From assembly GCF_006345805.1 (NCBI RefSeq), contig NW_021823700.1:1-23232 (forward strand): 23,232 bases of DNA, read 5' to 3'. Below the pieces are notes generated by a model. It was not told where the DNA came from. It saw nothing but the letters and a program-made list of their open reading frames with translations, and searched no databases. The position numbers and the translations under genes are program-made. This DNA comes from Octopus sinensis. Taxonomy: Eukaryota. Shown here in pieces: positions 1-22,790 of this stretch (position 1 is its first letter; each line of letters starts with the position of its first letter).

Positions 1-278
1 CCTTGGCGGTAGACCTCTCTTTGCGGTTTGATGGCCGAAACCACGCTGAATGAGATTTCTTTCGGAGCGCACACTCTTTCCACTTTGGCAGGGCCGCAAT
101 ATTTGTCTTGGACGTACTTCTTCACTTGGAACGAACGGCCTGTTACGCTATCATCCCATTCCATGGAGCATTGTGTTTTGCCTGGACAGGAACAGATGTG
201 TTGGATGTAGATGCCTTTCCTCCAGACACGGCCGCATACGTGATCGAGTGTGGGGCAGACGGGTATATATCTTTGAGG
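1..278 (-). CDS. Coding exon (runs off window) of a secreted Cys-rich protein, Argos/giant-lens (scoloptoxin-11-like) family candidate
   Basis: Manual minus-strand translation from 278 gives 92 stop-free codons: PQRYIPVCPTLDHVCGRVWRKGIYIQHICSCPGKTQCSMEWDDSVTGRSFQVKKYVQDKYCGPAKVERVCAPKEISFSVVSAIKPQREVYRQ. It is preceded by acceptor ttgtttttacAG (AG = + strand ct at 279-280), phase 0. The PVC..VC..CxCP..C..G..KxCxP..C pattern matches the Argos pattern as recalled. The exon is well supported; the family call is less certain. Confidence 0.82.
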
Positions 279-333
279 CTGTAAAAACAATAAATTAATA
301 ACATATTACCATCAACAACAGCAGCAGCAACAA

Positions 334-510
334 CAGGACTCATGAATGTATAAATGGCACTACTAGACACTGCACACATCTTACGTTAGGCGCTTTCAAT
401 ACAGTAAAAATAGCAACACTTAAACAAACCACATCACATACCCAAGTTACAAAGAGCTGCGCTCGGCAGTACAGCGAAATCACGTAATAAAAATAAAGCT
501 ACTGAATAAT
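334..510 (+). mobile_element. 5'-truncated 3' end of RLE-type (R4/Dong-like) non-LTR retrotransposon
   Basis: gcactactagacactgcacacatctta (ALL-TAHIL) plus a 3' UTR visibly homologous to 3210-3360; short aataat tail. Confidence 0.75.
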
Positions 511-758
511 GGTGGCGATATTAACAATTACGGAGATGTACTTGCATAGCAAGTGACCTGATCCGAGATCGTGTGCTGGAACGAAAACAATTGCAGCGTG
601 GAAGGTGTTTATAAGCCATTTAAGAAACACACAAAATCAGTTAGATTCACTTCAACATTTAAATTTAATTTTCCAAAATATTTTCGTCGCTTTGAGACCG
701 CGACCTGTTTACTGACAAAATGCAGCACGAAGTTTTGTCAGTGAACAGGTTGCGGTCT
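511..758 (-). mobile_element. Probable Penelope-like element pLTR remnant with inverted terminal duplication
   Basis: Contains a hammerhead-like fold (720-669) and an inverted partial copy (733-758); such arrangements are typical of Penelope-like element ends. Class is inferred. Confidence 0.45.
669..720 (-). ncRNA. Degenerate minimal type I hammerhead ribozyme, G3:C8 core variant
   Basis: Minus strand reads ttttgtca-GTAAACA-g-gtcgc(ggtctcaaa)gcgac-GAAA-atat-t-t-tggaaaa: stem I, core, 5-bp stem II, GAAA, palindromic stem III, UUU cleavage triplet. The inverted arm shows core GTGAACA. Confidence 0.5.
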
Positions 759-792
759 TACCTTCGTTGTCGTAACCGACGGAATGTCAGTA

Positions 793-1100
793 TTTTTGTT
801 TGTTCCTTCTCGAGCCATGCCTGGCTCATAAGGGCCGGTTTCCCGGTTTCCTTGGCGCATAGGTTCCTCACCTGGACGGGATGCTGGTCCGTCGCAGGTG
901 AGCTGCAAGATGCAGGAGGAAAGAGTGAGAGAAAGTTGTAGCGAAAGAGTCAGCAGAAGTTCGCCATTACCTTCTGCCGGAGCCGCGTGGAGCTTAGGTG
1001 TTTCCGCTCATAAATACACACATCGCCCCGTCTGAGATTCGAACCCGTGATCCCTCGACCGCGTGTCCGCTGCTCTAACCACTAGGCCATGTTCCTCCAC
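793..1100 (-). mobile_element. tRNA-derived SINE
   Basis: Minus strand has A box TGGCCTAGTGG and B box GGTTCGAATC; its 3' gaaaccgggaaaccgg motif is shared with the SINE at 14443-14680. Confidence 0.85.
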
Positions 1101-1262
1101 ATATATCGATAGTAGACTCAGATGAATGCTTTAAATGGATTCAGATTGATCAGGTTCCCATCGAATGCAGTTGTTTTACTCTCCTTCTCTTCAATGTATC
1201 CCACGAGGTGGAGAGCAACAGGAAAGTAAATCCAACGACGTATAAATGCTTTATTTGTAGAG

Positions 1263-1300
1263 CAATGGCTCTTAACCATTTTGTCTGTAGCTCTCCACTT
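1263..1300 (+). mobile_element. Isolated hAT-like MITE terminus
   Basis: caatggctcttaaccatttt resembles the TIRs at 10113 and 13497 and is preceded by ttgtagag, similar to the other target sites. Confidence 0.4.
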
Positions 1301-1375
1301 CTACGTAGTTGTTACGTCTTGCACTCATCTAAATGGTGAGTGAGATATCACGACTAAACTAATTTAATATGGACC

Positions 1376-1788
1376 CCAGCACTATGACCCGGCGGTGCCG
1401 GGTCTAGTGCTAAAGCTTGTTGTTCGTTGCCGGGTCGCAGTAAAAATTTCTCACTAAATCAAGAGCTAAGTTTCTTATCACATTTCAGCCCGGGCCAGTT
1501 TTGTTGTTTATGAGCTAGTTGGAGGTTTTTATGAGAGTAATTGATATTCATTGGACTTCGGCAATGCCCATATGCCCATAACTTATGGGCATAAGGGGTC
1601 AGTTTATCGATTTTTTTAATAACTTTCTGGGGCGACTGGGGAAATGAGGAGAGCTTCACGACCACCCTCAGACAATTTTGAAAGCCCATAGAAAATGTGA
1701 GCCTTTTACGTGAAAAACTGTGGATTTGTATAAAGGACACACAGACACACAGACAAACAGACATTTTGCCGTTTATAGATATAGAGAT
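1376..1788 (+). mobile_element. Non-autonomous Helentron/HINE-like element
   Basis: 5' 15-bp hairpin (1378-1411), 3' (GACA)n-like tract, then ...tttatagatatagagat end; this is the architecture of DINE-1/Lep1-type elements. Confidence 0.5.
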
Positions 1789-2213
1789 GACAGTTTATAA
1801 AATTTTGCTCCAAAAATGGATTGCATGAGCTTTTAACAGTAAACAGATAAAAAAGAAATTAATAAAGACAAAAATTGCAAATTAACTTTATACGCTGTAG
1901 CGTATAAAGAAGGAACATAAAGGGCTTAAAGGGGCTTGCAAAAGCGAAAGAAGTTGAATGACTGAAAGCTTAAAGGACTGAATATTATAGACCAGATGAT
2001 AACAAGATGATGATAATAAGTTTCTGAGGACAACAGCTCGGGGAAAGAAGCCGTTAGGATATTAAGGCTTATGACGAGCAGGAAGCTCAAGAGAGAAACG
2101 ATGTTTGGAAAAAGAAGCTGGTAACACGTTTAAAGGACATGAGAGCAACTACTCGGCCGGAATGTTGATCAGAGCAATGATTATGGAAATATCTATAGAA
2201 AAATGAAACAATA

Positions 2214-2640
2214 GGCGGTGCAGGAGTGGCTGTGTGGTAAGTAGCTTGCTTACCAACCACATGGTCCGGGTTCAGTCCACTGCGTGGCCACCTTGGGCAA
2301 GTGTCTTCTACTATAGCCTCGGGCGACCAAATGCTTGTGAGTGGATTTGGTAGATGGAAACTGAAAGAAGCCCGTCGTATAATGATATATATATATTATA
2401 TATATATATATATATATGCGTGTGTGGTTCGTGTGACTGTGTTTGTCCCCCTAGCATTGCTTGACAACCGATGCTGGGTGTGTTTATGTCCCGTTACTTG
2501 CGGTCGGCAAAAAGAGACCGATAGAATAAGTACTGGGCTTACAAAAGAATAAGTCCCGGGGTTGAGTTGCTCGATTAAAGGCGGTGCTCCAGCATGGCCG
2601 CAGTCAAATGACTGAAACAAGTAAAAGAGTAAAAGAGAGT
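2214..2640 (+). mobile_element. tRNA-derived SINE, family A (head + TA microsatellite + conserved tail)
   Basis: caggagtggctgtgtggtaag...gggttcagtcc head and ...ggcggtgctccagcatggccgcagtcaaatgactgaaacaag tail recur at multiple other loci in the window. Confidence 0.9.
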
Positions 2641-2861
2641 TTATAGTAATAAAGATACAATTTGACGATGCACCAAAGACTCCAACCTAGTAGAAAGAAG
2701 AGGACCCAGCATGTTAATAGATCGATTCTGAATTCGATCAAGCAAAGTTAAGACACTCAGTGGAGGCACCAATTCAAAGATGACAGAATCGCTCAATGCA
2801 AGGTTCAATGGTGGCCTTACAGAGTTACGAGATATTCTCAGGCGAAAGAAATTTGCAGGCA

Positions 2862-3373
2862 CGGAAAGAATAGTCTCAGAAAATGACAAAGCAACCACGC
2901 TCTGGGATATGCCGATAAACACAGATAGAGAAATCAAGGCTAATAGACCGGATATAGTAGTCAGGGATCACCAAGAGCAACATGCCTTCTAATCGACGTA
3001 TTAATACCAGCAGATGACAATGTATCTCTAAACGAAACAGAGAAACTCTCAAAATACAAAAATCTGGAAATAGAGGTAACTCGAATGTGGAGCCTAAAAA
3101 TATAAACAATCCTTATAATAATAGGTGCATTAGGTATGAATAAAAAACATTCAGACAAATACATAGCAAAAACACCGGGACTTACAAATGCATATAACAT
3201 ACAGAAAATAGCACTACTGGGCACCGCACACATCTTACAGAAAGCACTTTCGATACAGTGAAAATAAGAGCACCACAACAAACCACAGCACATTCCCAAG
3301 GCACACAGAGCGGCGCTCGGTGGTGCAATGACAGTACGTGATAAAAATAAGACTACGAATAATAATAATAATA

Positions 3374-3408
<35 letters not shown>
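2862..3408 (+). mobile_element. RLE-type (R4/Dong-like) LINE 3' fragment with (AAT)n tail
   Basis: Degenerate restriction-like endonuclease: ENDKATTLWDMPINTDREIKANRPDIVV..LIDVLIPADDNVSLNETEKLSKY..IGALG..ALLGTAHIL, with a frameshift and stop. Confidence 0.9.
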
Positions 3409-3410
<2 letters not shown>

Positions 3411-3509
3411 CCTACGCAAAATACTTTCTATGTAATCTCAAGGTTTAAAACAAACAATTTTAAAAATTTTATTTATTTAATTTTTATTTATTTATTAGAC
3501 ATTCACTCG

Positions 3510-3649
3510 TACAACACCAAAAAAAAACCCCGCAAATATATGGCACACTAGGCATAACAACAACGTGAACTTCCAACCTGTTGTCTCTTGAGGTCTCTGG
3601 GTGAGACTTGGAGGCAACTTGTAAAAATATAAAGCAAAAGTCAAACATA

Positions 3650-3697
<48 letters not shown>
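3510..3697 (+). mobile_element. 3' UTR fragment of a second RLE LINE subfamily with (AAT)n tail
   Basis: cctgttgtctcttgaggtctctgggtgagacttgga followed by (AAT)n; its start resembles 23146-23170. Confidence 0.55.
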
Positions 3698-4094
3698 ACT
3701 GTCGGCCGGATGTTATATTGAATAAGAGAGATAAATACTGTCAGATCATTGATGTAGCCATACCAAATGACATGGATGTTGTAAGTAAAGAGGCTGAAAA
3801 TATCACCAAGTACTCCGAATTGAAAGTGGAAATGGCAAGGCTGTATGGAATGTGAGAGGGTAGTGTAAAAGTGATACCAGTGGTGATCGGAGCGCTGGGC
3901 TCAATGCCATTGAAACTTCAAGACTTCTTAAGGCAACTGGTAACCCCATGCAAGATTGATGTTTTTGCAAAAAGCAACCTTATTGGTCACAGCGCACATC
4001 TTAAGGTAAGTATTATCTGTCTGAGGTCTTTGTTGTGACTTGACAGACGACTAAAGACTCCGGTGCATTTTTTTTACATACACTGCGTTACGAA

Positions 4095-4162
<68 letters not shown>

Positions 4163-4178
4163 CATAATAATAATAATA
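3698..4178 (+). mobile_element. Third RLE LINE subfamily 3' fragment with (AAT)n tail
   Basis: HCRPDVILNKRDKYCQIIDVAIPND..KEAENITKYSELKVEMARLYGM*..VIPVVIGALG..TAHILR; RPD..D..K..KY catalytic motif. Confidence 0.88.
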
Positions 4179-4625
4179 CTACAGCAAATATTCTGCTCAA
4201 TACCACAGATTTGCTTGTCAGTTGTTTGACCTTAACCAGTTGAGCATGTCCCCTAGTGGCTGACGGTATGTGCATCTCTGATCACGAGCAGAAGTAGTGG
4301 GGGAGCATCATAGCCATATGTTGAGAGGGATTCTTTGGGGTTTGAATAATTCACCTCTGGAAACATGGGTGGTTCGTTCAACATCCTTAAACAACCCTTA
4401 TTCAGGGACCTTTCGAGTGGGATGGGTTACTCGACCTGAAGAAAATTCTAACTGGGCCCCACCTGCAAGGTCATGTGCTGTTTATCTTGATATGAGATCA
4501 CCACGTATGGTTGTGATGCTTGTGCCTAGTGTACCCTTATCAAACGGGTAGTCATGATGGGTATACTGGGCTTCGTATACTTCACCCCAGTGTCACTTGA
4601 TGGCATGCACGTTTTCTCACTCAAT
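4179..4625 (+). mobile_element. Unclassified interspersed element flanked by (AAT)n
   Basis: About 450 bp of non-coding sequence embedded between (AAT)n tracts; repeat status is from recall only, with a single copy in this window. Confidence 0.4.
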
Positions 4626-4701
4626 CAATAATATATATAATAATAATAATGATAATAATATAATAATAATAATAATAATAATAATGATAATAATAATAAT
4701 G

Positions 4702-4750
<49 letters not shown>

Positions 4751-4751
4751 C

Positions 4752-4835
<84 letters not shown>

Positions 4836-4906
4836 TAATTATAATAATAATAATAACAACAACAACAACAACAATAACAATAAAAAAAAAAAAATAATAA
4901 TAATAA
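4626..4906. repeat. (AAT/GAT/AAC)n microsatellite
   Basis: Direct inspection. Confidence 0.97.
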
Positions 4907-4919
4907 AGGTGGTACTTAC

Positions 4920-5033
4920 AAGAACGACGTTCATCAGATTTGAAACCCTGTACGGCACACGAGCCTGATGTCCAGAGATGATTTGCACGACAGCATAGAT
5001 GAAGAAACAGCACAGCATTGATTGACTGGCCAT
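4920..5033 (-). CDS. First coding exon (signal peptide) of the Argos-like gene
   Basis: ATG at 5033 in context acaATGg; 38 codons MASQSMLCCFFIYAVVQIISGHQARVPYRVSNLMNVVL with a hydrophobic h-region and ISG/H cleavage-like site; ends at a perfect GTAAGT donor in phase 0, matching the acceptor at 278. Upstream acceptor candidate ttttttacatccgcatctcAG ends at 5085. Confidence 0.8.
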
Positions 5034-6364: not shown

Positions 6365-7072
6365 TTATGTATATATATGCATAGATACACACATATATAT
6401 ATACATATATATATACACACACAATATATTATATAATAGACATAGATAACAAATAATATATATACATATATATATACACACACACAAATATATATATATA
6501 TGCATAGATACACACATATATATATACATATATATATACACACACAAATATATATATATATGCATAGATACACACATATATATATACATATATATATACA
6601 CACACAAATATATATATATATGCATAGATAGAGACACACTATATATATATACTATATATATACACACATACAATAGATATATAGATATTATGCATAGATA
6701 ACACACATATATATATACATATATATATATATATACACACAAATATATATATATATGCATAGATACACACATATATATATACATATATATATACACACAC
6801 AAATATATATATATATGCATAGATACACACATATATATATACATATATATATACACACACAAATATATATATATATGCATAGATACACACATATATATAT
6901 ACATATATATATACACACACAAATATATATATATATGCATAGATACACACATATATATATACATATATATATACACACACAAATATATATATATATGCAT
7001 AGATACACACATATATATATACATATATATATACACACACAAATATATATACATATGCATAGATACACAAAC

Positions 7073-7100
<28 letters not shown>
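6365..7100. repeat. 60-bp minisatellite, about 12 units
   Basis: The 60-nt lines starting at 6781, 6841, 6901 and 6961 are identical; the anchor (g)catagata recurs 12 times. Confidence 0.93.
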
Positions 7101-7550: not shown

Positions 7551-7978
7551 CCATCATCATCATCATCATCACCCTCATCATCATCATCATCATCGTCATC
7601 ATCATCATTACCATCATCGTCATCATCGTCATCATCATCAACATCATCATCATCATCACCGTCATCATCATCACAATCATCGTCATCATCATCACCACAA
7701 TCATCACCATCATCATCATCATCGTCATCATCGCCACTATCACCACCATCATCACCAGCATCATCATCATCAACAACAACACTAACATCACAATCGTCAT
7801 CATCATCATCATCGTAATCAACACTACCGCCATCATCATCATCATCATCATCATCAACTACAACGTCGTCATCGTCGTCGTCGTCATATCTTTAGATGTA
7901 ATTGAATGGGTGTGTTTAGAGAGATGACACTAGGAACGTAACAACTACAACATCAACAACATCCCCACCACCACCACC

Positions 7979-8164: not shown

Positions 8165-8530
8165 GTAGCGGCGGTTGTGTAGGTGGTGGTGGTGGCTTTT
8201 ATGTGTAGGCGGTGGTGGTCGTGGTAGTGGTGGTGGCGGTCATGGTGGTGATGGTGGTGGTAGTGGTGATGGTGGTAGTGGTGATGGTGGTGGTGGTCGT
8301 GGTAGTAAAGTAGGTGGTGGTGGTCGTGGTAGTAAAGTAGGTGGTGGTGGTGGTTGTGGTGGTGGTGGTAGTGGTGGTGATGATGGTGGTAGTGGTGGTG
8401 GTGGTTTTTATGTGTAGGCGGTGGTCATGGTGGTAGTGGTGGTGGTGGTGATGGTGGTGATGGTGGTGGTAGTGGTGGTGGTGGTAGTAATGTAGGTGGT
8501 GGTAGTGGTGGTGGTGGTGGTGGTGGTGTG
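8165..8530. repeat. (GGT)n degenerate triplet array
   Basis: Direct inspection. Confidence 0.95.
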
Positions 8531-8816: not shown

Positions 8817-9069
8817 TACTCTTCTACTCTTTTACTTGTTTCAGTCATTTTGACTGCGGCCATGCTGGAGCACCGCCTTTACGTCGATCGAGCAAATCGG
8901 ACCCCAGGACTTATTCTATCGGTCTCTTTTGCTGAACCGCTAAGTTACGGGGACGTAAACACACCAGCATCGGTCGTCAAGCGATGTTGGGGGACAAACA
9001 CAGACACACAAACATATACGTACATACATACATACATACATACATACATACATACATACATACATACAC

Positions 9070-9125
<56 letters not shown>

Positions 9126-9750: not shown

Positions 9751-9987
9751 TATATTTCTTTACTACCCACAAGGGCCTAAACACAGAGGGGACAAACAAG
9801 GACAGACAAACGGATTAAGTCGATTACATCGATCCGCGGTGCGGAACTGGTACTTAATTTATCGACCCTGCAAGGATGAAAGGCAAAGTCAACCTCGGCG
9901 GAATTTGAACTCAGAACGTAACGGCAGACGAAATACGGCTACGCATTTCGCCCGGCGCGCTAACGTTTCTGCCAGCACGCCGCCTCA
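9751..9987 (-). mobile_element. SINE family E, full length with 14-bp TSD
   Basis: Homologous to 18650-18878; gcattcggaagata at 9737-9750 and 9988-10001. Confidence 0.93.
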
Positions 9988-10428
9988 GCATTCGGAAGAT
10001 AGAGTTAAACAACAAATCGACGTAGACACATAATTGGAGAAATCACAATTACCACATTTCGCTAACAAAAAGAAACGACGATACCAATTAGAGTACAAGC
10101 AATACTTTAGGTCAGTGGTTCTTAACCAGGGTCCATATAAGATTCTGAGGGGTCCATTCAACAAAATAGTAAATTAAGGATACATGAAAGTATTTTAAGC
10201 ACACCCCCCCCTGAAAAATTTTTGCTTTAGACGTATTTGCATGTATTGCAATGAAGAGCGAGGTTCTTTCTCTAACATTTCACATGATTCAACCTACACA
10301 AGTTCATGTGTGGAAAACAAAATAGGAATTTTGAAAGAAGTTTCTACAAAACTAGTTTTTAAACCTCAAATGGCGATGGAGTCCACTAGAATTAAATAGT
10401 AATCAAAGAGGCCCACGCAAGCAAAATA

Positions 10429-11339
10429 TTGCGTTGTCCGGAAAGTTCGTGCCGATTTATAGTAGCTTACCTTTCGACTTATTTTAGAACATGTATGTGT
10501 CCATAAAATAGGATTTGACTACGCCTCCATTTAGAGCACAGTTTAAGCTATCTTTTCGTGGAAGACGGTTTATGCTCCTATAATCTGTGTGGCGCATGGC
10601 TCAGTGGTTAGAGCGTCGAGCTTAAGATCGTGAGGTTGTGAGCTCGAATCCCGGACCGGGCTGCGTGTTGTGTTCTTGAGCAAGGCACTTTATTTCACGT
10701 TGCTCCAGTTCACTCAGCTGTAGAAATGAGTTGCGACGTCACTGGTGCCAAGCTGTATCGACCTTTGTCTTTCCCTTGGATAACACTGGTGGTGTGGAGA
10801 GGGGAGTCTGGTATGCATGGGCGACCGCTGGTCTTCCATAAACAACCTTGCCCAGACTTGTGTCTAGGAGGGTAACTTTCTAGGTGCAATCCCATGGTCA
10901 TTCATGACCGAAGGGGGTCTTTACCCAATCTGTGTTAATTATGTAACCCTTTAAAATGGAAGATAAGAAAGTTCATTTTCGGCACTTGATGCTTTGGGAA
11001 CCAGACAAAAATTGCTGCAGCTCGGCTGGGATGTTTTACCCCACCCTCCATATTCACCAGATATTGCTCCTTCGGATTTCCACTTATTCAGGTCTCTGCA
11101 GAATAGTCTTAATGGTAAAAATTTCAATTCCTTGGATGACATAAAAAGATACCTTGATGAATTCTTTGCCATGAAACCACCTCAATTCTGGGAAGAGGGT
11201 ATTTTCAAGTTAAAGGAAAGATGGAGACGCATTGTGGAACAAAATGGTTCATATTTGGTTGATTAAAAATGTAATGGCAAGTATTTCTTGACCTTTTTCT
11301 TTCCTTTAAAAAGCGGCACGAACTTTCCGGACAACCCAA
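10429..11339 (+). mobile_element. Internally deleted mariner with both TIRs and TA TSDs
   Basis: TA-ttgcgttgtccggaaagttcgtgccg ... cggcacgaactttccggacaacccaa-TA; MEDKKVHFRHLMLWE fused out of frame to TRQKLLQLGWDVLPHPPYSPDIAPSDFHLFRSLQN...GSYLVD*. Confidence 0.95.
10591..10926 (+). mobile_element. tRNA-derived SINE with 9-bp TSD inside the mariner 5' UTR
   Basis: A box TGGCTCAGTGG, B-box-like gctcgaatcc; aatctgtgt at 10582-10590 and 10927-10935. Confidence 0.93.
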
Positions 11340-11860: not shown

Positions 11861-12050
11861 AATACCTATTTCTTTACTACCCACAAGGGGATAAACACAG
11901 AGGGGACAAACAGGGACAGACAAAGGGATTAAGTCGATTATATCGACCCCAGTGCGTAACTGGTACTTATTTAATCGACCCCAAAGGGATGAAAGGCAAA
12001 GTCGACCTTGGCGGAATTTGGACTCAGAACGTAACGGCAGACGAAATACC
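11861..12050 (-). mobile_element. SINE family E, 5'-truncated
   Basis: Near-identical to 9751-9940. Confidence 0.9.
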
Positions 12051-12865
12051 ACCACCACCACCACTATCACCACCTTCACCACCAATTCCACCCCGACCAT
12101 CATCACTTTCATCATCGCTGCCACTACCGCTACCACTATCACCAACATGACAACGAAAACTGACGAGATGGTTATGGTTGGAACACCTTTGATCTTAGAT
12201 CTGTTCGGTCAAAGTTGGCCTGGAGTTTAACAAACACTACACCGCCACCCCACCCCACCCCACCATCTCTGTTATGTAACACAACTAGCATTACCATGAC
12301 CACCACTACCACCACTGACAACAACAAGATACCCTCCCCAACCATCATCGTCATAGCAACAGCACTACAATCTTCAGCTCCAGCAACACCCCCACCCTCA
12401 CCAGCACCTCTATCACCACCACCACTACCGCCACCACCACCACCACCACCACCACAATCGCTATCACGAAGACATTTCCCCCCTCCGCCGCCGCCGCCGC
12501 CGCCCATTCCAGTAGAACGGTGAGGAAGTGATGTCTGTTGCCCACGCAGAATGAGAGACACGTTAATAGCATTCCCGGCAACTCTTGGAGAACAATCTCA
12601 GCTATTTCCCCTTTGATGGAGTCGGCGGTGGTGGTGGTTGTGGTGGTGGTGGTTGTGGTTGTGGTAGTTGTGGTGGTGGTGGTGGTTGTGGTGGTGGTGG
12701 TGGTGGTGGTGGTAGCGATGATAACGGTGTTGTTATAATGATGATGATGAGGAGGAGGAGGAGGAAGAGGAGAAGGAAGAGGAGAAGGAAGAGGAGGAGG
12801 ATGGTGATAGCGATGGTGGTGGTGGTGGTGCTAGCAAGAATAACGGTGTTGTGATAATTTATGAC

Positions 12866-12913
<48 letters not shown>

Positions 12914-13125
12914 GAGGAGGATGGTGATAGTGATGGTTGGTGATGGTGGTGATGATGATGATGATGATAACGATTGTGATGGTGGTGGCATGATATTAAA
13001 AGTATTTATTATGAAAATAATTATAGCATGATGTGATGGTATTGGTTGTAGTGGACAAGGTGGCGGCAGTGGCGGTGGTGGCGGCGGCGACAGCGGCAGC
13101 GGGGGGTGGTGGTGATAATAGTGAT
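12047..13125. repeat. Compound triplet field: (CCA/CCG)n then (GGT)n, (GAG)n, (GAT)n
   Basis: Direct inspection. Confidence 0.92.
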
Positions 13126-13450: not shown

Positions 13451-13584
13451 AGAGACAAATGTTACTCAACCCTAGGTGATCCCTCATAATGTAGACCAGG
13501 GGCTCTCAACCATTTTTTTTATATATTGACCCCTATTGTATTCTGATTAACACATTATCTCGTACAGGTTGAACTAAGGAAACT

Positions 13585-14000
13585 GGAGTGGATGTATGGT
13601 AAGTAGCTTGTTTACCAACCACATGGCTCTGGGTTCAGTCCCACTGCGTGGCACCTTGGGCAAGTGTCTCTTCTACTATAACCTCGGGCCGACCAAAGCC
13701 TTGTGAGTGGATTTGGTAGACGGAAACTGAAAGAAGCCCGTCGTATATATGTATATATATATATATGTATGTGTATGTGTGTGTGTGTTAGTGTGTCTGT
13801 GTTTGCTCCCCTAGCATTGCTTGACAACCGATGCTGGTGTGTTTACGTCCCCATAACTTAGCGGTTCGGCAAAAGAGACCGATAGAATAAGTACTGGGCT
13901 TACAAAAGAATAAGTCCCGGGGTCGAGTTGCTCGATTAAAGGAGGTGCTCCAGCATGGCCGCAGTCAAATGACTGAAACAATTAAAAGAGAGTAAAGAGA
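13585..14000 (+). mobile_element. SINE family A
   Basis: Head, microsatellite and tail homologous to 2214-2640. Confidence 0.92.
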
Positions 14001-14199
14001 GGAAGAAAGTTGTTTCTTGTAATACATAGGAATACATACATCTAACGCAAGGGTTCTCAACACCCCTTTTTTTTTTATCTATGGACCCCTTTACTATTTT
14101 ATTCTGGTGAATCCTCATAGTCATTCAATGTTTAAAAACAGTTTTATAGAAACTTCTTTCAGAATTCCTCTTTTATTTGTCAGCCATTAACTTGTGTGG

Positions 14200-14698
14200 G
14201 TGGTTTGTAGGTAAGTAGCTTGTTTACGAACCACATGTTTCCGGGTTCAGTCCCACTGCGTAGCACCTTGGGCAAGTGTCTTCTGCTATAGCCTCGGCCG
14301 ACCAAAGCTTGTGAGTGGATTTGGTAGACGGAAACTGAAAGAAGCCCGTCACATATTATATATATATATATATATATCTATATATATAATATATATATAT
14401 GTGTGGTGTGTGTGTGTGTGGTGTGTGTGTGTGTGTGTGTGTGGAGGCACGTGGCTAAGTGGTTAGGGTTTCAGCATCATGATCGTATGACTGTGGTTTC
14501 GATTCCTGGACCGGGCGACACGCTGTGTTCTTGAGCAAAACACTTCATTTCACGTTACTCCAGTCCACTCAGCTGGCAAAAATGAGTAACACTGCGATGG
14601 ACTGGCGTTCTGTCCAGCTGGGAAACACGTACGCCATTGAAACCGGGAAACCGGGCCCATGAGCCTGGCTAGGCTTTAAATATATATACATACATACA

Positions 14699-14777
<79 letters not shown>

Positions 14778-15005
14778 GTGTGTATATGTTTGTGTGTCTG
14801 TTTGTCCCCCCCCCAACATCGCCTGACAACCGATGCTGGTGTATTTACGTCGCCGTAACTTAGCGGTTCGGCAATAGAGATCGATAGAAAAAGTACTAGG
14901 CTTACAAAGAATAAGTCCTGGGCTCGATTTGCGCGGTCGACTAAAGGCGGTGCTCCAGCATGGCCACAGTCAAATGACTGAAACAAGCAAAACAGTAAAA
15001 GAGAG
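14200..15005 (+). mobile_element. SINE family A split by another SINE
   Basis: Head 14200-14350, tail about 14790-15005. Confidence 0.85.
14443..14680 (+). mobile_element. tRNA-derived SINE nested in the microsatellite of a family A copy
   Basis: A box TGGCTAAGTGG, B-box-like tttcgattcc; 3' gaaaccgggaaaccggg shared with 793-1100. Confidence 0.85.
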
Positions 15006-15262: not shown

Positions 15263-15616
15263 ATCATCCTTGTTCGACCGTGGTCGAGACAATGGAATTT
15301 ACTATGTTACACCAGACTTCACGGTCCATCATAGCATTACGGAGGTCCTGTTGCTGGATGCTTGTATCCCTGGAGATTACATCAGGGTAGGAGAGTGTAC
15401 GCCCTCTGGGATCGCGAGCAGATGGCTTCCAGAGGAGAAGAGTAGAAATTGCCTCGTTTTCAGCTCTACAACAATGTCCAGCAAACTGGACTCTTCTACC
15501 TTTCACAAGAGATGATACAGGTGGTAGTTTCTCATATATTTGTACTTTGGTTGGATGACGCTTCCACGAGAGATTTTGAGCTCTCATAAGGAGGCGAGAG
15601 TAAGTTCCAACCAATA
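15263..15616 (-). mobile_element. RTE-clade LINE 3' fragment with (GAT)n tail
   Basis: YSRLLMRAQNLSWKRHPT..IYEKLPPVS..RRVQFAGHCCR..LLLWKP..DRE.W; gatacatc at 15255-15262 and 15617-15624 is a likely TSD. Confidence 0.85.
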
Positions 15617-15837
15617 GATACATCTAAAGCAAAAGAAATTTCACGGTCCCTTAAAATACTATCGTGAATTCCAATTTACTATTTTCTTGCGAGGGTCCCC
15701 ACAAAACCTTATATGGATCCTCAGAGGTCAGATGGACCCCGGTTGGAAACTACCGGTGTAGACCTATGATCAAAGACATTCCAACGACGATTAACACGAC
15801 TATTTTTATGACTACATTATTTGACGTGTTCTTGGCT

Positions 15838-16117
15838 GGAGGCGCGTGGCTTAGTGGTTAGGGGTGTTCGGCTCACGATCGTAAGAGCGTGGGTTCGATT
15901 CCCGGCGTAAGAGCGTGGGTTCGATTCACGTTTCTTCAGTTTACTCATCTGGCAAAAATGAGTCGCATCTGTAATTTCAAAGGACTGGTCTTGTCGCATT
16001 CTGTGTCACGCTGAATCTCCCTGAGAACAACGTTAAGGGTGCGATGTGTCTGTGGAGTGCTCAGCCATTTGCACGTTAATTTCAATTTCACGAGCAGGTT
16101 GTTCCGTTGCCCGGGAC
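15838..16117 (+). mobile_element. tRNA-derived SINE with duplicated B box
   Basis: A box TGGCTTAGTGG; cgtaagagcgtgggttcgattc occurs twice. Confidence 0.85.
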
Positions 16118-16185
16118 TAACACAGACGTAAAGACACGCACATACACACACACACACATACAGACACGTATAAATATACAACAAA

Positions 16186-16320
16186 CTTCTTTCAGTTTCC
16201 GTCTATTAAATCCGTTCACAAGTCACTGGTCGGCTCGGGGCTACATATGAAAAGACATCGCTAAGGTACCGTGCGGTAGGACTGAACCCGAAACCAAATG
16301 GTTGAGAAGCAACAGCTAAC
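16186..16320 (-). mobile_element. Diverged SINE family A head
   Basis: cttctttcagtttccgtcta...ggactgaacccg. Confidence 0.75.
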
Positions 16321-17441: not shown

Positions 17442-17477
<36 letters not shown>

Positions 17478-17648
17478 CATACATACATACATACGAGAGG
17501 CTTCTTCAGTTTCTGTTTACCTAATCCACTCTCAAAGCTTTGGTCGGCTCGAGATTATAGTAGAAGACACTTGCCCAAGGTGCCACGCAGTCGGATTGAA
17601 CCCGGAACCATTGGTTGGTGAGCAAGCTACTTCCCACACATACTCTCC
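17186..17648 (-). mobile_element. SINE family A, full length
   Basis: Reverse complement of the family A structure. Confidence 0.9.
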
Positions 17649-17844
17649 ATACCACAAACCTAACCTACAAAATAGTACTTAAACATTAATTCCAATCACC
17701 AACAAAGCCACCTTTATGATATAGTTAAGAATATCTCAATTCTGATATCTGAACCCTGTTTGCTTTCAATTAATTTTTGACTCTCCAATCTTGTTTTAAT
17801 TGTTTGATACTACATATATGGACATGCGGATGTATGCGCGTATG

Positions 17845-17880
17845 TATATGCATATATATATATATATAATATATATATAG

Positions 17881-17912
<32 letters not shown>

Positions 17913-17951
17913 TATAGTATATTATAATATATATATATATATAATATATAT

Positions 17952-17999
<48 letters not shown>

Positions 18000-18015
18000 T
18001 ATATATATTGTATAT
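17845..18015. repeat. (TA)n microsatellite
   Basis: Direct inspection. Confidence 0.95.
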
Positions 18016-18016
18016 A

Positions 18017-18430
18017 GGCGCAGGAGTGGCTGTTTTTGTAGTAGCTTGCTAACCAACCACATGGTTCCGGGTTCAGTCCCACTGCGTGGCATCTTGGGCA
18101 AGTGTCTTCTGCTATGCCCCCGGGCCGACCAATGCCTTGTGAGTGGATTTGGTAGACGGAAACTGAAAGAAGCCTGTCGTATATATGTATATATATTAAG
18201 TATGTGTGAATATGTTGTGGTGTCTGTGTTTGTTCCCTAGCATTGCTTGACAACCGATGCTGGTGTGTTTACGTCCCCGTCACTTAGCGGTTCGGCAAAA
18301 GAGACCGATGAATAATACTGGGCTTACAAAGAATAAGTCCCGGGGTTGATTTGCTCGACTAAAGGCGGTGCTCCAGCATGGCCGCAGTCAAATGACTGAA
18401 ACAAGTAAAAAGAGTAAAAAAAAAGAGAGT
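18017..18430 (+). mobile_element. SINE family A, full length
   Basis: ggcgcaggagtggctg head through aaacaagtaaaaagagt tail. Confidence 0.92.
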
Positions 18431-18434
18431 AAAA

Positions 18435-18489
<55 letters not shown>

Positions 18490-18639: not shown

Positions 18640-18649
18640 TGTGTGTGTA

Positions 18650-18878
18650 GGTGGCGAGCTGGCAGAGACGTTAGCACGCCGGGCGAAATGCTTAGCTGTA
18701 TTTCGTCTGTCGTTACGTTCTGAGTTCAAATTCCACCGAGGTCGACTTTGCCTTTCATCCTCTCGGGGTCGATAAATTAAGTACCAGTTTCGCACTGGGT
18801 CGATGTAATCGACTTAATCCCTTTGTCTGTCCTTGTTTGTCCCCTCTGTGTTTAGCCCCTTGTGGGTAGTAAAGAAAT
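18650..18878 (+). mobile_element. SINE family E, full length
   Basis: ggtggcgagctggcagagacgttagcacgccggg...gagttcaaattcc (B-box-like)...gtgggtagtaaagaaata. Confidence 0.92.
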
Positions 18879-19619
18879 ATATATGTGTATGCATGTATAA
18901 GTATTTGTGTATATATATGTGTCAATGCATGCATGCGTATATATGTATATGAATGTATGTGTGTATCTGTATGTGTGTGTGTGTGTATGTGTATATATAT
19001 GCATGCGTACGGGTTTAAATATACAAGTACGCAGGCCTATATAATACTGTATGCACACACACACATATATGTACATGTGTGCGGGCGTGCATATATCGAT
19101 ATACACCTCCTTCTTTCTCTTTGATTCCTCAACCCACACTATCACATTCGCCAGCAGAATAAACACATAAGTATATAAAAACTTAACCATTCTTAGTATT
19201 CTTCCTTCCGTTTTGAGGTTTACTACTCACTTTAGAACCCCCCCTCCTATACCTTTTTCTGTACCCATCCCTTAGTGCCATTCTAACATATTACCCCGCC
19301 TCACATACCTCACACATATTCATTACTTACATTCTTATCTCTTCCTACCATTCCCCTACTCCTCTCCCATTCTCCTCATAATATCTTGACCACCAACTAA
19401 CACTCCTTTTTTCACTTTCGCTCCTTTTTTCACTTTTTTCACTTTCGCTCCTTTTTTCTGCTTTCTCTTCTTGTTTTCATTTTCTCTTCCTCTTTCTTTA
19501 CTTCTTCTTTTCTCGCCTTTTCTTTTGACCCCTTTCCTCATTTTAACACACACACACATCTCTTCTCCCCTCTCTATCCACTTAATACTACTACTACATT
19601 CTCAAATTTTCATTCACAC

Positions 19620-20030
19620 CACAAGACCCTTTTGAATGAACAGCACATGGAATCTACGTCTCCACACTTCCCATTTGTAATGACAAAATACGAACTCCTA
19701 TTGGAATTTACATACCGTGGACAGGAAGCATTTCTACCACTTCTACACACCACTCTCCTTGGAAAGGGAATTGCAACTATAACATCTTTATATTTTTTTA
19801 TTTTTATTTTTATTTTTATTTATACATTCATTCTCCTATTTCTCTATATAATCCTTATTTCCTTCCTTTTCTAAAATAAATCCTTATACTAAACTCTAAT
19901 ATTTCCCTCTAACCATCTCACATCGTCTCTGATGAAGGGATATCCCTAATATCCCAGAAACAGCTGTAAAACTAACTTTCTCTTTATAAATGTCCGGAAA
20001 ATTCCACACAGACTTGGCTTTGTTGTCTCA
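19620..20030 (+). mobile_element. Penelope-like element 3'/pLTR remnant
   Basis: Carries a minimal hammerhead with a palindromic stem III, characteristic of Penelope pLTRs; boundaries approximate. Confidence 0.45.
19924..19973 (+). ncRNA. Degenerate minimal type I hammerhead ribozyme
   Basis: cgtct-CTGATGA-a-gggatat(cccta)atatccc-a-GAAA-c(agct)g-TA-aaact: intact core, 7-bp stem II, GUA triplet; A:A at 10.1/11.1 and 2 of 5 stem I pairs lost. Confidence 0.7.
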
Positions 20031-20041
20031 TTTCATTTTAA

Positions 20042-20074
<33 letters not shown>

Positions 20075-21344
20075 ACACACACACCACACTCATATGTACA
20101 GACACGTTACATATTCTTCAATATCGCATCATATCCAAATAGATTACTACAATCAAATCATTCCAAAATTACATATTCGAAAGTAGATTTTTACATTCAA
20201 ATTTCACAATACATTATTAAGCACTCCAGGGCATATTATTCCCCAAATACATAATTACAAACAAGTTTCACTTCCTTTTAGCAGACATTCATCGCAATGT
20301 ATGTGTGAAATGTCTTGCTTGTGTGTGTGTGTGTGTGTAATAATTGATTATATCAACATCAACATCGAGAGGATTCATGAGTCTTGTCGATAATATAATA
20401 GTTTCTACAATGTTTGTACCAAGATAAAATGCATACGGTAGACTCTGGAAAGTGGCTGTTTTAGGAATGACACACCATGGTAGAAAATGGAAGGCATGAG
20501 CGAAATTTGGCCCTGTAAATTTTAATAAGGCAGTGAATTCGAATAAATAGTGGCACGGACTTTGAGGACCTGTCCAGTCAGTACCAGCATAGAAAGCAGA
20601 TGTAGATCGATAATGATGTGGATATGCATTGCATTCACACACACACACATACTTAATTTGTGGACTACGGCTACCATTGGTTTCATGCAGAGAAGTTCCT
20701 TAACAATTAATAAGCTCATTGTATGTAACATTGGTGTTAGTCTTCATTTTGGATAAGAACACGAAAAATCATGTAAAATCGCGTAGCTTTAATCCACAAA
20801 TAAAGAATCTTTGTCCACCAATGTGGTGTTGAGCACTCATTCTCATTGCTCGATATTTACGTGTGTGTGTGTGTGCATGCGTGTGTCTGTGCGTGTGAGC
20901 TTGTGTGCATATGCATATCTATATCCATATCTATTTATATCTATCTATCGATCCCTCCGTCCTCTCTCCGTTTTTCTCTCGCTCTCATACACAATATATT
21001 TGCGACTGCATGACTTTTCTTTGTTGTATATGTACAGCTATATTTAGCCACGTTTGTTTTTGTCATTGTCCAGTACGTTCGATAGCTATTCCCGGTAGCT
21101 TTTCGCCACTGGCTTCACCAAAAGTGAACGATATCAACGTCAAAGGCGCGAAATTGTAATGATCTTTTGGTCGTTGACTGATGCGGAATTAGCTACGAGT
21201 TTTCTCTTTCTTGTGTTTTTGTGACATTTCCCATTTATTGTGTTTTTCTAAAATTTTTGAAATACACACACACACAAACACATATAATGTACTATATATA
21301 CGCTCGTACATATGTATAAATACTTTTGGTAATGTATGGAATAG

Positions 21345-21351
21345 TATAATA

Positions 21352-21417
<66 letters not shown>

Positions 21418-21422
21418 TAATA
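21345..21422. repeat. (AAT)n microsatellite
   Basis: Direct inspection. Confidence 0.97.
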
Positions 21423-21604
21423 GTCAGATGAAATAAAGGAATTGTTCCTTAGTTTATTTATACACAGAAAATGTCTTCAAATTTTCGAAAGAAAGGAAAT
21501 GGAATGGAATAAAATAAAAATAAAATAATATAAAAAAATACATGATGATATATTTACGTTGTTACATTTAATAATTTGTCTAGCTCTTGAGAGAGCATGT
21601 GCGT

Positions 21605-21642
21605 TTATATACATATGTAAGTTATATATATACATATATATA

Positions 21643-21724
<82 letters not shown>

Positions 21725-21725
21725 C

Positions 21726-21760
<35 letters not shown>

Positions 21761-21781
21761 TGTATATATATGTATAATATA

Positions 21782-21827
<46 letters not shown>

Positions 21828-21836
21828 GATATATAT
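21605..21836. repeat. (TA)n microsatellite
   Basis: Direct inspection. Confidence 0.97.
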
Positions 21837-22259
21837 AGGGACGAGGGTCTGTGAGTGTATAGTGAGGCTGGGTGAATTTTTTTTTTTTGTGTTTATGTTT
21901 ACATTTGTATGTAAAATATCAAAGTTGTGTAGAGCGGGAGTTGGCGTAGATCGTACTGAAACTCTCTGGTCAACGCCTAACGTGTGGGAGGCAAGACAAC
22001 CAAAAACAGAACAGAATGTTAAGGAAAACAAGACTGAATAGTACATGTATAAATGCACGTGCACACACGTACACATACACATACACACACAACACACACA
22101 TATACACCAACGCACATGTAGACATACATACACATATGCAAACAAGCGCATGTGAGTGTATATAGATATAGATATATATATATATTGTATACAGTATACA
22201 GTACATTATATATATATATAAAATTCCAATCTCCATTTTCTTTTTCTTATATATTTAAA

Positions 22260-22790
22260 TTGTGTGTATATATATATAAATATATATATATACACAAACA
22301 CAAGAAAGAAAATTTAATGATGAAGATATGTTTAAGAATATGCTTATAAATATATGTATATATATATATATGTTATATATGAAATTTATGTATGAATTTA
22401 TATATGCATGTATGTACGTGCGTACGTACGTATGTATGTATGTGTGTGTGTGTGGTGTGTATGTATGTATGTGTGTATGTGTGTGTATGTATGTATGTAT
22501 GTATGTATGTGTGTGTATGTATGTATGGATGGATGGATTGATCGATCGATCGATTGATGTATGTATGTATGGATGTGTGTTTTGATGTATGTATATATGC
22601 ATGTGTGTGTGGATGTATGTATGTATGTGTGTGTCGCTGTATGTATGGATGGATTATGCATAGAGAGAGTGGGAGAGAGAGAGAAAGTAGAAAGAGAGTG
22701 GAAAGAGAGAGAGAGAGAGAGAGAATGCTGTACACATGCGCGTATATAATCAAACACATTCACACACACACACACACACACACACCCGCA
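22260..22790. repeat. Compound (TA)/(TATG)/(GA)/(CA) microsatellite
   Basis: Direct inspection. Confidence 0.9.

Follow-up and report, generated by a model that had tools for sequence, protein, structure and literature searches.

A conserved cephalopod gene with an Argos-like product at the edge of an Octopus sinensis contig

The stretch of DNA analysed here (the window) comprises 23,232 nucleotides (nt) of the Octopus sinensis contig NW_021823700.1. Its first 278 nt, read on the minus strand, belong to a gene for a small cysteine-rich protein. An original prediction, made from the letters of the window, had described this segment as a hidden exon of a secreted protein resembling Drosophila Argos (giant-lens), which sequesters a ligand of the epidermal growth factor (EGF) receptor EGFR. 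We could confirm that window 1-278 (minus strand) is really exonic and makes up most of coding exon 2 of one gene that is conserved in cephalopods. Sequence comparisons support the assignment of the octopus protein to the Argos or "two-finger" (2FTX) family of protostomes with its three CxC-containing domains. Taken jointly, the reality of the exon, the gene model, the orthology, the purifying selection and the homology to Argos are in our view highly probable.

The minus-strand frame runs without a stop from base 305 to window base 3 and comprises 101 codons from stop to stop. Translation of window positions 278..3 (minus strand) yields 92 residues with exactly seven cysteines (PQRYIPVCPTLDHVCGRVWRKGIYIQHICSCPGKTQCSMEWDDSVTGRSFQVKKYVQDKYCGPAKVERVCAPKEISFSVVSAIKPQREVYRQ; PQRYIPVC...EVYRQ), and the acceptor ttattgtttttacAG (tttttacAG), a polypyrimidine tract with AG at 280-279, is located immediately 5' of base 278. 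Translation and inspection of the splice site thus bear out the 92 stop-free codons, the seven cysteines and the clean acceptor that had been read from the letters. The exon had further been called hidden and missed by the track of open reading frames (ORFs). It does lack a start codon and run off the window edge, but the gene is already modelled publicly: the window peptide equals residues 39-130 of a 234-amino-acid (aa) predicted protein in the public annotation (P0006), encoded by the window's own genome, letter for letter, and exon 1 equals its residues 1-38. The odd number of cysteines in the window fragment arises because exon 2 contains ten in total, of which C134, C136 and C164 lie just past the window edge.

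The length of the frame alone is no proof of coding. In the same window 135 frames run for 70 codons or more without a stop, and since it is rich in microsatellites (62 tandem-repeat rows) frame length is uninformative here. A frame open by chance, or a pseudo-exon that is no longer functional, would fit a window that microsatellites fill with long spurious open frames. Against this stands the homology to an annotated ortholog, because of which we judge the frame to be real: in a full HMMER scan against 1.84 billion representative proteins the exon peptide gave one strong match, to an ortholog, with E = 6e-44, and its identity to the Argonauta hians protein P0002 amounts to 60% over all 92 residues. 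The exon boundary at 278 coincides with the position in three annotated orthologous genes and in spliced transcripts. The splice sites are exactly kept in three further genomes, spliced mRNA is present in a relative, and the changes relative to Octopus vulgaris are synonymous only, all of which makes the probability of a chance frame negligible. Three further matches to the exon were dismissed (P0003, P0004 and P0005; E 2e-5 or weaker), two of them being repetitive (P0003 and P0005) and the third a protein of 2,707 aa (P0004). Nothing was found in favour of the plus-strand frames overlapping the exon (50..298 and 54..284).

Three coding exons make up the gene: the first encodes the signal peptide, the second the Argos-like domains 1 and 2, and the third domain 3 (coordinates in Table 1). 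Of the 16 cysteines of the mature chain ten are encoded by exon 2 and the last six by exon 3; the window portion of exon 2 represents most of domain 1 and holds seven of the 16. By exact look-up P0006 was located on the Octopus vulgaris chromosome OX597836.1 (GCA_951406725.2, locus L001). There, base 16128 corresponds to window base 1, and the 106 nt by which exon 2 extends past window position 1, intron 2 and exon 3 fall outside the window. The flanking DNA of the two loci is 92-97% identical; the sequences are not the same. In the coding part that can be compared between the window and L001 (390 nt) we counted two synonymous and no non-synonymous differences.

Both introns are in phase 0, and their positions are the same in O. 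vulgaris, O. bimaculoides and Argonauta hians. The context of the intron 1 acceptor is common to O. vulgaris and O. bimaculoides, and the spliced junction NMVL|PEKE is uninterrupted in four mRNA contigs (L003-L006). Among the orthologs, intron 1 is shortest in Argonauta (1,152 nt), longer in O. bimaculoides (4,207 nt) and longest in O. vulgaris L001 (5,736 nt). Its length thus varies much between close relatives, as the 4,641 nt of the window compare with 5,736 nt at a locus that is 92-97% identical. At the N-terminus the protein reads MASQS followed by MLCCFFIYAVVQIIS and G|HQ, which by inspection is a hydrophobic signal peptide. Equivalent hydrophobic N-termini are present in all orthologs, and a helix at residues 3-21 is the only part of the AlphaFold model with a predicted local distance difference test score (pLDDT) of at least 60. 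Inspection of this signal peptide shows the octopus product to be a predicted secreted protein.

Orthologs were found in O. bimaculoides (P0009; GCA_001194135.2) and in Argonauta hians (P0002; GCA_054771915.1), the latter being a 237-aa protein with the NCBI name "uncharacterized protein LOC115226858". A fourth species provides an uninterrupted ORF of 233 aa (P0010) on contigs of 1.2-1.6 kb from five RNA sequencing runs (SRR27666065/67/69/71/82). These contigs are spliced mRNAs, as they cross both exon junctions. In a fifth source (ERR3431203, P0008) the domain 3 exon follows an acceptor at the same position. A 266-aa version of the protein (P0007, also P0011-P0013; L002 318-1118) was recognised as an artefact of the gene caller, in which a TGA stop is read as Trp; the true product has 233 aa and ends in ...HVCSA.

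The ratio of non-synonymous to synonymous substitution rates (dN/dS, method of Nei-Gojobori) is 0.071 between O. vulgaris and O. bimaculoides and 0.12-0.15 between Octopus and Argonauta. Long blocks are invariant across four species and the loops between the cysteines are nearly so. These sequence comparisons point to strong purifying selection on the gene. Missing ortholog conservation or missing expression of the frame had been named in the original prediction as speaking against it; we found orthologs under purifying selection and a relative that expresses the spliced mRNA. Of the outcomes listed there as refuting, none was observed.

Homolog harvesting, with the exon against the library of 1.84 billion representatives and with the full-length protein in word-index searches, returned cephalopod sequences only and no Argos-like protein of gastropods or arthropods. 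As the exon search found no relative outside the cephalopods, the cephalopod branch appears to be quite diverged. A second homolog cluster was not found in the protein searches, while the window's own genome was not searched for paralogs; the cephalopod gene is apparently single-copy.

The relation to Argos was assessed with profiles, by direct alignment and with predicted structures. When 24,736 Pfam families were scanned, the Argos family (PF11581, curated cut-off 25 bits) was passed by the ortholog P0010 (30.8 bits) and by its 266-aa version P0007 (27.9 bits). Below the threshold were the C-terminal fragment from Argonauta (21.8 bits), the family consensus (20.5 bits), the domain 3 exon of P0008 (17.2 bits) and residues 131-234 of the octopus protein P0006 (15.3 bits, E 0.021). 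All matches to PF11581 are colinear, with profile positions 6-126 corresponding to protein residues 94-213, and no other family recurs. Within the window exon the model reaches only the final third, starting near QDKYCGP. Ly6, uPAR and snake-toxin families of Pfam appeared in none of the scans at E <=10.

For the direct alignment we compared the unmodified octopus mature protein with residues 26-191 of the Drosophila Argos PDB chain 3c9a_A. The sequence of this chain was obtained through chimeric baits, in which octopus sequence carried the Argos motifs of the original prediction, and the scores of the baits (24.9 and 72.8 bits) were not used as evidence. The Smith-Waterman score between octopus and Argos was 103, compared to 34.9±5.8 for shuffled Argos sequences (maximum 68, z 11.8), a value reached by 0/5000 shuffles. 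When the cysteines were held fixed during shuffling of Argos the background rose to 42.0±9.0, and 1/5000 reached 103. A hidden Markov model of the cephalopod family scored Argos with 20.1 bits, rank 1 of 20,001, the best shuffle having 15.5 bits. All 15 cysteines of Argos 26-191 are colinear with octopus cysteines, including all seven of the window. The spacings between them are 6,13,1,5,23,8,25,1,27,5,5,22,1,5 in octopus versus 5,14,1,5,21,8,24,1,26,7,5,20,1,5 in Argos. For the window exon alone against domain 1 of Argos the signal is weak (Smith-Waterman 42, equalled by 95/5000 shuffles), with all seven cysteines aligned.

The suggestion that the exon is Argos-like is hence supported by the Pfam matches of the orthologs, the alignment score of 103 and the colinear cysteines. 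The Argos motifs quoted with that suggestion are accurate as well, since 3c9a_A reads LPVC..VC..IERQCRCP..C..GHT..KMCQP..VC. Domain 1 of the octopus protein aligns to this crystal chain, from which the long insertion of the fly protein has been deleted, with gaps of <=3 residues. The domain 1 insertion of the fly is therefore missing from the octopus protein, as had been proposed. A CxCP motif had been expected soon after VYRQG: a CxC is present there (GVVCLCKSP) and aligned with HCRCP of Argos, but it reads CLCKSP and not CxCP.

Foldseek was run with the predicted models against 350,542 PDB chains; as the models are of low confidence, the outcome was counted as rank evidence only. With the low-pLDDT model of P0010 four Argos chains occupy ranks 1-4 (E 6.6e-3 to 2.9e-2), followed by the next match at E 2.2. 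With the octopus model, likewise of low pLDDT, two Argos chains are found at ranks 1-2 (E 0.36 and 0.97), and uPAR appears at rank 8 with a non-significant E of 2.0. As far as such models allow, the ranking agrees with the sequence comparisons.

If the octopus protein worked as Argos does in Drosophila, its three domains would close around the EGF domain of a secreted EGF-family ligand and keep that ligand from reaching EGFR. The protein would in this case be a diffusible extracellular feedback antagonist of EGFR signalling, in development or in the nervous system. We consider the best explanation as a whole, a conserved Argos-family gene whose product traps EGF ligands, to be evenly balanced between right and wrong. 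Its mechanistic part, the trapping of an EGF ligand by the octopus protein and its withholding from EGFR, is possible by analogy and falls a little short of an even chance.

A number of results weigh against this explanation. No Pfam Argos match (E <=10) was obtained for the window exon or for full-length P0006, P0009 and P0002. The Pfam check that had been proposed for the exon thus succeeded with the ortholog P0010 (30.8) and its 266-aa version P0007 (27.9), which exceed 25 bits, and left the exon and the full-length octopus protein unmatched. Sequence searches of the PDB with the exon, P0002, P0007 and a 3-sequence family profile returned no Argos at E <=10; weak matches to p73, anillin and eL21 in the PDB were regarded as noise. 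Over 179 aligned columns about 26% of the residues are identical to those of Argos, one third of these being cysteines. The two AlphaFold2 models, built from 3- and 5-sequence alignments, are unreliable (pLDDT 33.2 and 34.2) with strand pairing at low confidence, and the Foldseek matches to Argos reach a template modelling (TM) score of only ~0.2 at E 6.6e-3 or worse. For the octopus gene itself we found no sign of expression; the sole contig that the exact look-up returned for P0006 is genomic. On the functional side, among Argos-like proteins ligand binding has been assayed only for the fly protein and for no non-arthropod member, the knockout of the C. elegans homolog M6.4 is without phenotype, and the authors of the 2025 study call an EGFR role of Argos-like proteins speculation (PMC12514838).

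Part of these results would also fit a secreted cysteine-rich protein with no kinship to Argos, the likeness being due to convergence or an artefact of composition: database-wide searches with octopus sequences alone gave no significant Argos match, the structure models are poor, and the Argos chain was retrieved through chimeric baits whose own scores are meaningless. However, the unmodified octopus protein stands out against composition shuffles with a z of 11.8, and with the cysteines fixed 1/5000 shuffles equals it. Argos is the sole family among the 24,736 of Pfam that is matched repeatedly and colinearly, above the cut-off in one ortholog, and in the Foldseek comparison with 350,542 PDB chains both separate models have Argos chains at the top. 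We therefore regard convergence as highly improbable. Octopods are venomous. The protein is small, secreted and disulfide-rich, and the venoms of cone snails, turrids and centipedes contain proteins of the 2FTX or Argos-like kind (PMC12514838), so that an Argos-like 2FTX recruited as a toxin of the salivary gland, which the original prediction had offered as one option, could be imagined. The sequences argue otherwise: dN/dS is 0.07-0.15 and the inter-cysteine loops are nearly invariant, whereas toxin families are hypervariable there. Domain 3 is kept (six cysteines, CTCP, matching the domain 3 part of PF11581), whereas conotoxins are without it. The searches gave a single homolog cluster and no hint of an expanded gene family, and the gene structure is like that of the endogenous gastropod gene and unlike that of toxin genes. 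Because it is constrained and has retained domain 3, the octopus gene resembles the endogenous class and not the venom class, and a venom component is disfavoured as very unlikely.

A role in the same family with a different target is harder to set apart from EGF-ligand trapping. The protein would again be secreted, with its 2FTX scaffold binding another extracellular partner such as a growth factor, a receptor or a channel. Folds of the three-finger, Ly6 and uPAR type bind many different targets, the ~26% identity to Argos resides mostly in framework residues, and the exon search of 1.84 billion representatives gave no relative outside the cephalopods. The Argos-like family is divided into 12 sequence clusters, and neither the silent knockout of M6.4 nor the Aplysia homolog, which is highest in pedal ganglia, speaks specifically for EGFR (PMC12514838). 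In contrast, all three domains and all cysteines needed for the Argos clamp are kept, and Argos is the sole family member of known function; the strong purifying selection agrees with an endogenous partner that is conserved, whichever it may be. Another partner is in our opinion a serious alternative that is somewhat improbable. The proposal that the cephalopod protein is a working EGF-ligand trap, with Argos-type sequestration being ancestral to protostomes and not a speciality of arthropods, is tentative and rather doubtful. If the protein were a working trap, it might act in the octopus eye or nervous system, in line with the expression of the Aplysia homolog in ganglia.

The standard example of a secreted inhibitor that captures the ligand instead of blocking the receptor is Argos, whose function is known only in Drosophila. 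The link to Argos makes the product a specific candidate for the control of EGFR signalling in an animal that has camera eyes and a large nervous system, and the short, insertion-free octopus protein should be easier to express than fly Argos. The gene itself is not new: it is already annotated, and Argos-like proteins of protostomes including molluscs were described in 2025 (PMC12514838). The term "uncharacterised" in the original prediction holds for the public names, which still read "uncharacterized"; the novelty was overrated, as the gene is annotated and molluscan Argos-like proteins have been published. The octopus and Argonauta public entries contain no recorded Pfam Argos match. Cephalopods go unmentioned in PMC12514838, and our literature search found no paper linking Argos and cephalopods and nothing relevant on LOC115226858. 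Knowledge of the family is left unchanged, and the practical value lies in an upgraded annotation and a clean gene model.

Repeats and other open frames occur elsewhere in the window (Table 1). The tandem array of 60-nt units and the TA-rich tract around it yield long spurious open frames rich in Tyr, Ile and Cys on both strands. The frames in the trinucleotide arrays (poly-His, poly-Asp, poly-Gly, poly-Thr and poly-Pro) show no sign of coding. Several more copies of the dispersed repeat of ~400 nt, which looks like a SINE-type element (short interspersed nuclear element) of the octopus genome, are located in the flanks of L001. Copies of the second dispersed repeat family are clustered head to tail around 26715-27319 of L001, and the family occurs elsewhere as well. 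Two frames gave an unconfirmed impression of mobile elements. A plus-strand frame contains a motif typical of the C-terminal part of mariner/Tc1 transposases and may come from a decayed transposon; it has no Pfam match even at E <=10. A minus-strand frame of 119 codons resembles the ORF2 tail of invertebrate retrotransposons without long terminal repeats (non-LTR) and gave no significant Pfam match. The next gene called downstream of the Argos-like gene in Argonauta hians (locus L009) is a zinc-type alcohol dehydrogenase. At the two Octopus loci no neighbouring gene was called within 10 kb.

Table 1. Coordinates of the gene and of other features in the window and at related loci
Feature	Position	Strand	Remarks
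Coding exon 2, first 278 of 384 nt	window 1..278	-	residues 39-130 and two bases of Gly131 of the 234-aa protein
Intron 1, 3' splice site	window 279..298	-	polypyrimidine tract, then AG (280-279); ttaatttattgtttttacAG directly before CCT
Intron 1	window 279..4919	-	4,641 nt, phase 0, GT..AG; (AAT)n-rich; contains a dispersed repeat copy
(AAT)n arrays of intron 1	window 3358-3408, 3651-3696, 4097-4178, 4627-4906		up to 94 copies
Intron 1, 5' splice site	window 4914..4919	-	GTAAGT; equivalent donors in three other genomes
Coding exon 1, 38 codons	window 4920..5033	-	ATG at 5033-5031; MASQSMLCCFFIYAVVQIISGHQARVPYRVSNLMNVVL; signal peptide and start of the mature chain
O. vulgaris L001, exon 1	10001-10114
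O. vulgaris L001, exon 2	15851-16234		384 nt, P39-K166
O. vulgaris L001, exon 3	17719-17922		followed by the stop codon
Tandem array of 60-nt units	window 6366-7095		11.8 copies, 91% matches, inside a TA-rich low-complexity tract of ~870 nt
Long (CAT)n, (GGT)n, (CAC)n and (ATG)n arrays	window 7552-7856, 8211-8528, 12387-12968		stop-free frames of 100-190 codons
Dispersed repeat of ~400 nt	window 2223-2640, 13584-14004, 18014-18439	both orientations	80-91% identity
Further stretches of the ~400-nt repeat	window 8819-9091, 14206-14442, 14750-15001, 17453-17649
Second dispersed repeat family, ~190-230 nt	window 9753-9984, 11861-12050, 18649-18883
Frame with a possible mariner/Tc1 transposase motif	window 10967-11266	+	PHPPYSPDIAPSDFHLF
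Frame resembling a non-LTR ORF2 tail (unconfirmed)	window 15264-15623	-	119 codons; RVQFAGHCCRAENE
Argonauta hians L009, alcohol dehydrogenase	19655-22454	-	ADH_N / ADH_zinc_N

Among the closest known systems is Drosophila Argos (3C9A/3CGU; PF11581), which like the octopus protein is secreted and built of three consecutive domains with CxC(P) motifs, reading CSCP / CLCK / CTCP in octopus and CRCP / CRCP / CQCP in the fly. Apart from the cysteines the two share the blocks PVC, C.P....VC, Y...F.C..L...C.R..PC..FT and N..LC.CP...C. Fly Argos contains an N-terminal region of 122 residues and an insert of 119 residues in domain 1, both of which were deleted for crystallisation (PMC12514838). The octopus protein is without both: it has 234 aa in total and only ~24 residues from the predicted signal peptide to the first cysteine. 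It further differs in the domain 2 motif, CLCKSP compared to CxCP in Drosophila, and in that its full-length sequence stays below the Pfam cut-off.

The fold type of the Argos domain was named two-finger toxin (2FTX) by Khilji et al. 2025, who described ~1800 secreted Argos-like proteins across protostomes, including the molluscs Aplysia, Pomacea and Conus (PMC12514838). Argos domains are three-finger-like with two fingers only, and venom proteins of centipedes and conoideans share the 2FTX fold (PMC12514838). Argos-like proteins of other molluscs (XP_005110430.1 of Aplysia californica and the non-toxin proteins of Pomacea canaliculata and Conus) combine, as in octopus, a signal peptide with three 2FTX domains and no flexible inserts. 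They come from the same phylum and, compared by published description, the endogenous ones are like the octopus protein well conserved relative to toxins. Endogenous gastropod Argos-like genes have four exons (intron phases 0,1,0), of which the first encodes the signal peptide and the last domain 3 (PMC12514838). In gastropods and cephalopods alike these two exons are each bounded by a phase-0 intron, but cephalopods have three coding exons (phases 0,0) and the middle phase-1 intron inside domain 1 is absent. The gastropod relatives were not reached by the exon search at E <1e-3, the sequences being much diverged. C. elegans M6.4 and other protostome 2FTX proteins are, by description, similar in their predicted secreted three-domain Argos-like architecture (PMC12514838).

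Venom 2FTX proteins (the macro-conotoxin Tx33.1 and related superfamilies, and the Argos-like scoloptoxins of centipedes) consist of the same two-finger domain type as the octopus protein. Tx33.1 and Argos share the five disulfides of domains 1-2 (PMC12514838), and octopus exon 2 likewise encodes ten cysteines. As judged by published description of the toxins, conotoxins differ from the octopus protein in their missing domain 3, their hypervariable loops between the cysteines and their other intron phases; hypervariability is described for 2FTX toxins in general, and the lack of domain 3 for those of cone snails (PMC12514838). The superfamily of Ly6, uPAR, three-finger proteins and TGF-beta-receptor ectodomains has a cysteine framework that differs from that of the octopus protein.

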